A stretch of DNA of 64,000 nt. It comes from Macrostomum lignano (lineage: Eukaryota). The notes under the pieces were generated by a model. It was not told the DNA's origin. It saw only the letters and a list, made by a program, of their open reading frames with translations, and did no database searches. A program made the position numbers and the translations under genes. Below, one piece after another: positions 29,801 through 32,800 of this stretch. Within the stretch, counting starts at the first letter, position 1. Every line of letters starts with the position of its first letter. The DNA is taken from NCBI GenBank assembly GCA_002269645.1, contig NIVC01000799.1, positions 62,001 to 126,000 on the forward strand, given 5' to 3'.

Positions 29801-32800
29801 CCTGCCGAATTTGGGACATTGGCAAGAAGGTAAGCGTTTGGCTTTTGAGTGATTCTATAATAAAATCAGCATTACTCAGTCACTCGCTCATTATTTTCAT
29901 TTTATTACTTTTGATTTCTAGCTGGTAAGTTCGTCACTAATTGTGTCGGTTTGTAAAGGCTGCAAATTGTGCTTTGTGACTTTTGATTTTCTTGTCTTTT
30001 TTCCTAGAAATTTTGTTTCCTGTCTGTAGTAATTCTTTATTGTCAAATATTACCCATCTGTCCTCTTGTGAAGCACTGCGGGGCAGAATTCATATTTTAT
30101 ACGAAAACTCATTTATTACTGTTTTAATTTTTTCATTTATTGTTGTGTCTTGCTAACAGTCCTGCACCCTTTGCATCCTTAGTAGTGAATTAGGATTTCT
30201 CTAGGTTGCAACGATGCGGTCCAGTTTGTACACTGGTTGCAATGATGCGGTCCAGTTTTTATACTGAGTTTATCTAGTACACTGGGCTACTCAACACTAC
30301 TTTGCCCATTTTTTCATTTATCTTTACGAGTAATTATTTGCCAAGCAATTTAGCAAGTCCAAGTAGCCCTTCATATATTTTTTCACCCTCCGACGACAGC
30401 ATTGTCTAAACGATATTGTTTGATAAAGTGCACATCTCTCGATTCTAAATTACAGTTTTGAATTCTAAATGGGTTAAGATTAAAATATGCTTATCTCCTT
30501 TTTCATAAACGTATTGCAAATGAAGAACTTCATGATTTTTGCGCGAATAGGCTAGAAGAACGAGAGAATATCGAACGAGAGAGAGGGCAAGGGGGCGTGA
30601 GGTGGGTGTTAGGGGGCAGAGAGCGGAATGTCTATTAGCTGCGCTATTCCTTGGTCAGGCGGCGTGAGGTGGGTGTTGGGGCAGGCCAGATTGGAGAGTG
30701 TACATTAGCTGCGCTTTTTCTCAGGCAGCGTGACGTGGGTGTTTGGGCACGCCAGATTGGAGAGTGTAAATTAGCTGCGCTATTCCTTGGTCAGGCGGCG
30801 TGAGGTGGGTGTTGGGGCAGGCCAGATTGGAGAGTGTAAATTAGCTGCTTTTTCCTTGGTCAGGCGGCGTGAGGTGGGTGTTTGGGCAGGCCAGATTGGA
30901 GAGTGTACATTAGCTGCGCTACTTCTCAGGCAGCGTGAGGTGGGTGTTTGGGCAGGCCAGATTGGAGAGTGTAAATTAGCTGCGCTATTCCTTGGTCAGG
31001 CGGCGTGAGGTGGGTGTTTGGGCAGTCATGGAAGAATGTTAATTTGGCTGTACATTGACCTGCCAACCCTCTCGCTCCCGCTCGCCGCAGACTATGCTGC
31101 ACAAGCTGCACTCTGGCCCGGCCCGCTCCGTAGCGTTTAGCCAGAACGGCGAGATGCTGGCAGCCGGCTTAAAGAACGGCAGCGTCCTGCTGTTGAACAC
31201 GGCCAGCCTCAAGCTGATTGGCAAGCGTCGCGACCGCGGCAGCGTAGTGAGCGATGTGCGCTTCTCGCCCGACTCCAAACTGCTGGCTGTGGGCTCGGCC
31301 GAGGGAGCGGTGGACTTCTATCAGGTTTGTGAATGGCTTGCAAATCCGTTTACCTGTGAATAGAGTACAGTCTACCCGTGAATAGAATCCATTTTACCTG
31401 TGAATAGGGTCCAGTCTACCTGTTAATAGCGTCCAGTTTACCTGTGAATAGGGTCTAGTTTACCTGTGAATAGATTACAGTTTACCTGTGAATGGGGTCC
31501 AGTTTACCTGTGAATAGAGTACAGTTTACCTGTGAATAGAGTCCAGTTTACCTGAGAATAGAGTCCAGTTTACCTGTGAATAGAGTCCAGTTTACCTGTG
31601 AATGTGGTCCAGTTTACCTGTGAATAGAGTCCAGTTTACCTGTGAATAGAGTCCAGTTTGGGTAGTGTAGCTCGCTTGGCTAGTAAAAGGAAAATGAATC
31701 CGAAAATCAACATTGTGTAAGTAACGACGCGTTTCGCACTCCTAGGTGCATCTTCAGGTTTATTTTTTCAACAACGAAAACATAGTGACGCGGGTCACCT
31801 ACTCCGTGTCTTTTGATGAGAGAGAGTACTGGGTGTACATTCTTTCCGCCCCGGACTTCACTCTGCCGTACGGACTAACTCATGTGTTCTCCAATATCGA
31901 TTTGTTCAATAATTTTCTTGTTTACCTACAACCAACTCCACATATTTATTCGCAAAACCTGTTCAATTTCGTTGTTGAAAAAATAAACCTGAAGATGCAC
32001 CTAGGAGTGCGAAACGCGTCGTTACTTACACAATGTTGATTTTCGGATTCAGAGTCCAGTTTACCTGTGAATAGAGTACAGTTTACCTGTGAATGGGGTC
32101 CAGTTTACCTGTGAATAGAGTAAAGTTTACCTGTGAATAGAGTACAGTTTACCTGTGAATAGAGTACAGTTTACCTGTGAATAGAGTACAGTTTACCTGT
32201 GAATGGGGTCCAGTTTACCTGTGAATAGATTACAGTTTACCTGTGAATGGGGTCCAGTTTACCTGTGAATAGAGTACAGTTTACCTGTGAATAGAGTACA
32301 GTTTACCTGTGAATAGAGTCCAGTTTACCTGTAAATAGAGTACAGTTTACCTGTGAATGGGTTCCAGTTTACCTGTGAATAGAGTCCAGTTTACCTGTGA
32401 ATAGGGTCCAGTTTACCTGTGAATAGAGTACAGTTTACCTGTGAATAGAGTACAGTTTACCTGTGAATAGAGTACAGTTTACCTGTGAATGGGGTCCAGT
32501 TTACCTGTGAATAGAGTACAGTTTACCTGTGAATAGGGTCCAGTTTACCTGTGAATAGAGTCAAGTTTACCTGTGAATAGAGTACAGTTTACCTGTGAAT
32601 AGAGTCCAGTTTACCTGTGAATGGGGTCGAGTTTACCTGTGAATAGATTACAGTTTACCTGTGAATGGGGTCCAGTTTACCTGTGAATAGAGTACAGTTT
32701 ACCTGTGAAAAGAGTACAGTTTACCTGTGAATAGAGTACAGTTTACCTGTGAATAGAGTACAGTTTACCTGTGAATAGAGTCAAGATTACCTGTGAATAG

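Follow-up and report, generated by a model that had tools for sequence, protein, structure and literature searches.

Insertions of Penelope-like elements (PLEs) are strongly 5'-truncated, often with an adjacent inverted copy that is itself 5'-truncated; they carry a tail of 30 to 40 bp, often at one end only, and show a strong insertion bias to microsatellites and simple repeats (Craig et al. 2021, PMC8557442). The commonest arrangement of the copies is head-to-head, and the first 12–22 codons of the open reading frame (ORF) sit in the pseudo-long terminal repeat (pLTR) and the tail (Arkhipova et al., PMC3846280). A purified PLE protein was found to cut and extend both DNA strands, with reverse transcription beginning at two adjacent internal sites, the tail being the sequence between them (Frangieh et al. 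2024, PMC11167929). Dual minimal hammerhead ribozymes (min-HHRs), about 100–700 bp apart on opposite strands, have been noted in Schistosoma (Cervera and de la Pena 2014, PMC4209133). The anatomy of PLE insertions is well described already. Here we describe a 391-bp non-repeat island (31660–32050) that splits a 22-bp satellite in an intron of an EML-like gene of Macrostomum lignano. It lies in a stretch of 64,000 nucleotides (contig NIVC01000799.1, positions 62,001 to 126,000, assembly GCA_002269645.1; hereafter the window, to which all coordinates refer). We put at about three in four the probability that the island arose as a PLE insertion that was dead on arrival, with extreme 5' truncation, copies placed head-to-head and a tail on one side only.

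The island was delimited by reading of the sequence and by Tandem Repeats Finder (TRF), and both bore out the limits given for it in the original prediction, which had been made from the letters alone. An inverted-repeat search found two arms (31695–31779 and 31967–32051) that are 100% complementary over 85 nt, with 187 nt between them. The perfection of the repeat and its spacer were therefore as first described, but its length had been given as 84. The 85th pair is made by the first satellite base and, because of this, there is a 1-nt uncertainty in the boundary, in the length of the tail (35 or 36) and in that of the flanking duplication (12 or 11). Thirty-five nucleotides (31660–31694) separate the left arm from the satellite, while on the right nothing lies between arm and satellite. 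The extension had been correctly placed on one arm only; its length, reported as 36 nt, is 35 or 36 owing to the boundary base. The arms are arranged head-to-head, with the 3' ends (in the hammerhead sense) pointing outward and the 5' ends inward, and only the left copy runs 35 nt past the shared end. The 187-nt core would be either upstream pLTR/3'UTR sequence contiguous with one of the arms or captured filler, and either orientation would fit.

When this anatomy was compared with that of 5'-truncated PLEs carrying an inverted pLTR and a tail (Pen2a_Av of Adineta vaga; Penelope/Poseidon, Neptune and Naiad), the same head-to-head inverted copy of the 3' end was found. The one-ended extension, which is optional and 30–40 bp long in such insertions, is 35–36 nt in the island and 31 bp in Pen2a_Av. 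Strong 5' truncation and a simple-repeat target are also shared. A short target duplication is known from such insertions, and the island has an apparent one that is ambiguous within the array. Moreover, the pLTR of canonical-clade PLEs bears a hammerhead motif, as do the arms of the island. The island differs from these insertions in the extreme degree of truncation (85 nt in one copy, no more than 272 nt in the other), in having neither reverse transcriptase (RT) or endonuclease (EN) sequence nor a direct pair of pLTRs, and in its target, a 22-bp minisatellite where theirs are (TA)n or (CA)n microsatellites. The combination of an inverted pLTR with a short one-sided tail, given as frequent in PLE copies in the original prediction, matches what has been published (PMC8557442, PMC3846280, PMC11167929).

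Both arms read C3UGAAGA9-U-GCAC(CUAGGA)GUGC-G12AAA15.1-CGCG-U16.1C17, one on the + strand (31989–32020) and the other on the – strand (31757–31726). The conserved hammerhead core is complete (C3 U4 G5 A6 N7 G8 A9, G12 A13 A14, A15.1/U16.1 and C17). Helix II consists of 4 bp (GCAC/GUGC) closed by the loop CUAGGA, its first pair being G10.1–C11.1, and one unpaired U stands between A9 and helix II. Helix III lacks a loop: A15.1-CGCG-U16.1 forms the 6-nt palindrome ACGCGU, which can pair only with a second ribozyme. In helix I three pairs are contiguous, formed by the AAC that precedes C3 and the GUU that follows the cleavage site, and more pairs are possible beyond internal loops. C17 falls at 32020 on the + strand and at 31726 on the – strand, in agreement with the cleavage position predicted earlier, after 32020. 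A descriptor for min-HHRs (CUGANGA, an optional extra nucleotide, a helix II of at least 4 bp beginning with G10.1–C11.1, GAAA, a palindromic helix III, and UH) matched twice in the 64 kb, both strands being scanned, and not once in 200 dinucleotide-preserving shuffles. With a looser hammerhead descriptor, no sites beyond those two appeared in the window.

Judged by sequence, the minimal type I hammerhead core is complete in both arms, and its helix III is palindromic, as in the ribozymes known from PLE pLTRs; in this the original prediction was right, the motifs starting at 31989 (+) and 31757 (–) with every core position and the ACGCGU palindrome present. The features shared with metazoan PLE min-HHRs (Cervera and de la Pena 2014) are the type I topology, the full core, the unpaired nucleotide between A9 and G10.1, the G10.1–C11.1 pair, the absence of a closed helix III, a palindrome pairing between two ribozymes, a short helix I, and pairs on opposite strands 100–700 bp apart. 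Compared with the strict minimal form, helix III of the island has a 2-nt palindromic insertion, as have variants in Drosophila, rotifers and shrimp. Four features beyond the descriptor emerged in that survey (PMC4209133), the fourth being the existence of covarying families across a genome.

From this anatomy we infer the machinery to have been the reverse transcriptase and GIY-YIG endonuclease of a PLE. Its product would be two 5'-truncated copies of the 3' end (the hammerhead pLTR region) of one PLE-family RNA. The endonuclease would have made a staggered cut in the 22-bp satellite, with the top-strand nick after ...CCAGTTT (31659) and the bottom-strand nick 12 nt leftward. As read from the sequence, nicks so placed (the top one after GTTT) would leave two 3' overhangs, each able to prime cDNA, and would yield a 12-bp duplication. 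Both 3'-OH ends would then have primed reverse transcription near the 3' end of the element RNA. The top-strand end (31659) would have begun at the downstream start site, giving the 35-nt tail and an arm in the minus-strand sense, and the bottom-strand end (32051) at the upstream start site, giving a tailless arm in the plus-strand sense. The two cDNAs, one 85 nt long and the other no longer than about 272 nt, would have been joined head-to-head, with the 187-nt core left between the arms. The hammerheads would be sequence inherited from the pLTR of the parent.

No difference was found between the arms over 85 nt, from which it was calculated that at most 0.018 substitutions per site have accumulated since insertion (approximate 95% limit). 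Either the insertion is young, or the arms have been homogenised within the palindrome. The original prediction had taken the lack of mismatches as a sign of recent insertion; the lack of mismatches stands, homogenisation being the alternative account of it.

An ATG at 31713 on the – strand, 11 nt past the predicted cleavage site, begins a frame that stays open for 18 codons through the end of the arm and the whole tail (31713–31660). Its position agrees with that reported for the start of the PLE ORF, within pLTR and tail, but such a frame is not significant on its own (p about 0.4). By analogy with Pen2a of A. vaga, it may represent the N-terminus of the parent PLE ORF.

The transcript of the whole element, from either strand, was predicted by thermodynamic folding to form the full 85-bp hairpin, at about –188 kcal/mol. 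The hammerhead conformation of the monomer came to –2.6 kcal/mol, compared with –14.6 kcal/mol for the minimum free energy structure of the arm. The hammerhead fold was not recovered when the arm was folded alone or together with the tail, and the models thus gave it no independent structural support. When two arms were cofolded, the helix III region paired between the strands, but in a competing 10-bp register. It may be noted that one transcript contains one sense motif and its antisense, and not a dimer, as the ribozymes lie on opposite strands. The hammerheads of this copy are almost certainly inert, remnants that do not function as a pair, because they are on opposite strands, because helix III needs two ribozymes in one RNA, and because the transcripts are predicted to fold into the 85-bp hairpin. 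The term "twin-hammerhead", used in the original prediction, holds for the DNA but not for a working RNA, where the two motifs cannot cooperate in one transcript. As published, PLE min-HHRs cleave poorly in vitro. A biological effect through double-stranded RNA (dsRNA) is more likely, on these models, than one through ribozyme cleavage, since the hairpin lies in the host pre-mRNA (+ strand).

In that pre-mRNA the perfect 85-bp inverted repeat with its 187-nt loop (31695–32051, +) is a potential substrate for dsRNA editing or small-RNA production, and in DNA a potential cruciform or fragile site.

The symmetry of the structure, with a sense hammerhead near the 3' end of the transcript of each strand, could also be that of a heritable foldback unit. 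The inverted arms would then be part of the transposing unit, the transcript of each strand would end in a sense ribozyme, and the island would represent a twin-hammerhead element of a genuinely new sort. For some pLTRs, bidirectional promoter motifs have been proposed (PMC3846280), which would suit such a unit. We consider this highly improbable. With 85 bp perfectly paired within the molecule, the hammerhead would be kept from folding and RT would have a poor template; the one-sided tail is predicted by two RT start sites and not by a symmetric unit; and inverted pLTRs are known to arise as a side effect of insertion.

The inverted repeats and flanking direct repeats might, on the other hand, have nothing to do with a retroelement. 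They could belong to a DNA transposon (a miniature inverted-repeat transposable element, MITE, or another element with terminal inverted repeats, TIRs), to a tRNA-derived short interspersed element (SINE) of the Sm-alpha type, or to an assembly or chimeric-read artefact, in each case with a hammerhead-like string arising by chance. The left inverted repeat is not terminal: 35 unique nucleotides precede it inside the island before the satellite break, and no duplication flanks 31695. For these reasons a MITE/TIR element was rejected; a 12-bp duplication would also be atypical of a TIR transposon. The start of the tail, GGGTAGTGTAGCTCGCTTGG, loosely resembles a tRNA D-arm/A box. ARAGORN found no tRNA, and this likeness was rejected. 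A tRNA-derived SINE was likewise set aside, with no tRNA-related head detected (ARAGORN; no tRNA or SINE match in Rfam at E ≤ 10) and with no poly(A), A-rich or simple-repeat 3' end. The dispersed schistosome SINE-like elements Sm-alpha and Sj-alpha are, like the island, short, non-coding and hammerhead-bearing, but they have pol III A and B boxes, canonical hammerheads and no long inverted arms, whereas no tRNA-like head was detected in the island. Palindromic chimeras are known to arise in some long-read data; an artefact would nevertheless not be expected to reproduce the length of a PLE tail. A chance hammerhead string is opposed by the shuffles described above, in which the descriptor was never satisfied. 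Taken as a group, these explanations seem to us very improbable.

Several results weigh against a PLE insertion. No RT or GIY-YIG coding remnant was detected in the 391-bp element by a Pfam scan of a 97-aa ORF that runs across the core; this ORF matched no Pfam family, and no word-sharing candidate was found for it among 5.8 billion proteins. When 1.84 billion representatives were scanned in full with HMMER, the same ORF gave no RT, no EN and no true homologue. (Four matches in that scan were rejected as spurious, being tandem-repeat proteins aligned through repeated short stretches.) The contiguous part of helix I is just 3 bp, as against about 4–5 bp flanking the core taken as the reference for min-HHRs; the min-HHR of D. 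virilis has a 2-bp helix I (PMC4209133). Helix II, with 4 bp and a 6-nt loop, falls below the 6–8 bp usual in PLE min-HHRs. The arm RNA shows no unusual stability (z about 0, with or without the tail), and self-cleavage by the parental motif is a capacity predicted from sequence. The Rfam hammerhead models (Hammerhead_1, Hammerhead_3, Hammerhead_II, HH9 and HH10) gave no match at the gathering threshold in the whole window and none at E ≤ 10 in 31500–32200, so that covariance models, to which the original prediction had looked, failed to register its hammerheads. In the latter interval Rfam returned just chance miRNA-like matches arising from the hairpin, and over the window as a whole no family of any kind reached its gathering threshold. 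The miss is unsurprising because the motif has no closed helix III; min-HHRs were themselves detected by a purpose-built RNAmotif descriptor (PMC4209133).

The flanks of the island are also equivocal. The string AGAGTCCAGTTT is found on both (31648–31659 and 32051–32062), and the original prediction was correct in that the letters are repeated on the two sides. Its status as a target-site duplication is ambiguous because the array is 22-periodic. Within the 22-nt unit, the array breaks off at phase 4 on the left and is taken up again at phase 14 on the right, which a 12-nt duplication and a 10-nt deletion of the target fit equally well. Both junction units carry a TCC variant, which in the right array occurs in 7 of 47 units (TAC being present in 24 of 47). 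This shared variant gives weak support to a true duplication.

Nor were relatives of the element found. By blastn there is no second copy in the 64-kb window, the host genome itself lying outside the collections searched. No parent PLE was detected in the scans of metagenome and viral DNA; these collections do not contain the host genome, the best match to an EML exon (in ENA metagenome contigs) being 76% identical. The pattern CTGANGANGCACN{4,8}GTGCGAAACGCGTC had 0 matches in metagenome and viral contigs, and a 23-mer from the 3' end had 0 in viral contigs. Two metagenome matches to the pattern CTGANGAN{14,18}GAAACGCGTCGTTAC were rejected as chance: they were GC-rich, resembled bacterial coding sequence, had no helix II, and were about as many as had been estimated for chance. 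In an EML locus of a related species (L001), only chance-level blastn matches of 13–20 nt were seen, and a relaxed hammerhead scan found nothing. A search of the literature with the ribozyme sequence string returned just unrelated PCR primers. As the host species is missing from the collections scanned, this absence of relatives weighs little in either direction.

The 391 bp without a coding remnant could also come from a non-autonomous hammerhead family, retrozyme-like or consisting of the pLTR only, whose short non-coding RNA served as the template for PLE enzymes acting in trans; the mechanics of insertion (twin priming and the tail) would be identical. Such a template RNA is plausible, since animal non-LTR retrozymes stem from PLE pLTRs, have units of 51–972 bp and occur as dispersed monomers (bioRxiv 10.64898/2026.07.22.740005), and since pLTRs alone are enough for unrelated sequence to be moved in trans, also when what they have captured between them is non-coding (PMC3846280). 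The island has in common with these retrozymes a size of a few hundred nucleotides, the lack of coding sequence, a type I hammerhead and an evolutionary tie to PLE pLTRs. Retrozymes, however, are direct tandems in which same-strand ribozymes delimit the unit and from which circular RNAs are formed, whereas the motifs of the island are inverted and leave no excisable unit. The direct tandem repeat and the same-strand hammerhead pair by which retrozymes are defined are both absent. The island was rejected as an animal non-LTR retrozyme, as the window contains only two motifs, on opposite strands, and no direct repeat of the element. The missing ORF does not discriminate, because the 272-nt end of a 5'-truncated PLE of several kb would be non-coding too. 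Moreover, there is no second copy to show common 5' ends, the host genome being outside the collections. We consider this explanation unlikely.

In its fuller form, the island would be a copy of an undescribed and very small non-autonomous family. The RNA of this family, of about 270–310 nt, would be pLTR-only or retrozyme-derived, would carry a min-HHR and would depend on PLE enzymes in trans for its mobilisation; perfect hairpins in introns would be a regular outcome of its insertion and could feed small-RNA silencing of the parent PLE. This, too, we consider unlikely. The suggestion of a new tiny retroelement family, raised in the original prediction, over-reaches, and a one-off truncated PLE insertion is the more economical reading. 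The element is classifiable only as PLE-derived and not as a PLE, because it has no RT or GIY-YIG ORF; it is compatible with a 5'-truncated PLE fragment. The features on which this reading is built are collected in Table 1, together with the neighbouring exons.

Table 1. Coordinates of the island, its parts and its surroundings in the window
Feature	Position	Strand	Evidence and remarks
Left part of the 22-bp satellite (insertion target)	31348-31659		TRF: period 22, 14.2 copies
Left copy of AGAGTCCAGTTT, apparent 12-bp target-site duplication	31648-31659		Sequence and phase analysis; ambiguous in the 22-periodic array
One-sided tail, 3' extension of the minus-strand-sense copy	31660-31694	-	Inside the island, outside the inverted repeat; length fits the 30-40-bp PLE tail; neither a tRNA nor an Rfam match
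Left arm, putative 3'-terminal 85 nt of the element RNA, 3' end pointing left (outward)	31695-31779	-	Inverted repeat, 100% over 85 nt
Left-arm min-HHR, C3 at 31757 to C17 at 31726	31726-31757	-	Motif scans; predicted cut 3' of 31726
Unique core, 187 nt	31780-31966		No similarity elsewhere in the window
Right arm, putatively the same 3'-terminal segment, 3' end pointing right (outward), no tail	31967-32050	+	Inverted repeat
Right-arm min-HHR	31989-32020	+	Sequence and motif scans; predicted cut after 32020
Right copy of AGAGTCCAGTTT	32051-32062		Sequence and phase analysis
Right part of the 22-bp satellite	32051-33105		TRF: period 22, 48 copies
Upstream EML-like exon (WD/beta-propeller)	31055-31324	+	ORF 31055-31363; Pfam Beta-prop_EML_2, E=2.3e-18; end inferred from a GT donor at 31325
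Downstream EML-like exon region, approximate limits	33355-33603	+	ORF list; resembles an EML exon motif at 25 kb

The intron that holds the island belongs to a + strand gene and lies between an exon at about 31055–31324 and another within 33355–33603. This EML-like gene (15623–31324 and 33355–35978, +) has repeated sets of HELP/WD propeller exons, like EML5/6, and its best database matches are named "microtubule-associated protein-like 6". In the two closest EML loci searched (ENA metagenome contigs, 73–76% exon identity), reverse-transcriptase (RVT_1) ORFs were observed in or beside the gene (L001, 589–1668; L002, 1–667). The next intron downstream contains an unrelated 22-bp satellite of 96 copies (33634–35757).

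Introns and intergenic DNA throughout the window (1000–63900) are full of varied minisatellites that are long and fairly homogeneous, their periods ranging between about 12 and 205 bp (for example 5758–8733, 28008–28305, 28817–29098, 30590–31025, 33634–35757, 37273–38387, 43259–44858 and 61071–63845). A 599-aa single-exon ORF (9193–10992, –) matches the Pfam family Otopetrin (E=1.1e-12). A word-indexed search of 5.8 billion proteins gave no homologue for it, which suggests that the host lineage is poorly represented in databases. Another ORF, of 133 aa (13609–14010, –), has a weak match to the rve integrase core (E=0.002), which falls short of the Pfam cut-off; it is probably what remains of a decayed LTR retrotransposon or DNA transposon, unrelated to the island. 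Downstream of the EML-like gene lies a gene for a rhodopsin-family G protein-coupled receptor (GPCR), with an ORF at 48271–48609 (+; 7tm_1, E=1.3e-11). From their translations, 57728–58039 and 60512–60994 (+) might be guessed to be further GPCR exons.

The island, as an unusually compact and undecayed natural case, would correspond to the product, twin-primed from two start sites, that in vitro work of 2024 reconstituted. The putative RT start sites can be read from it at single-nucleotide resolution, the arm ending in ...GGATTC(A) and the tail in ...CACTACCC. The 85-bp hairpin in the EML-like pre-mRNA could serve dsRNA pathways. The finding would gain greater importance only if genome-wide data were to reveal a dedicated non-autonomous family. 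As a PLE-derived fragment, the island matters mainly for annotation, and it would mark recent or ongoing PLE activity in the host genome.

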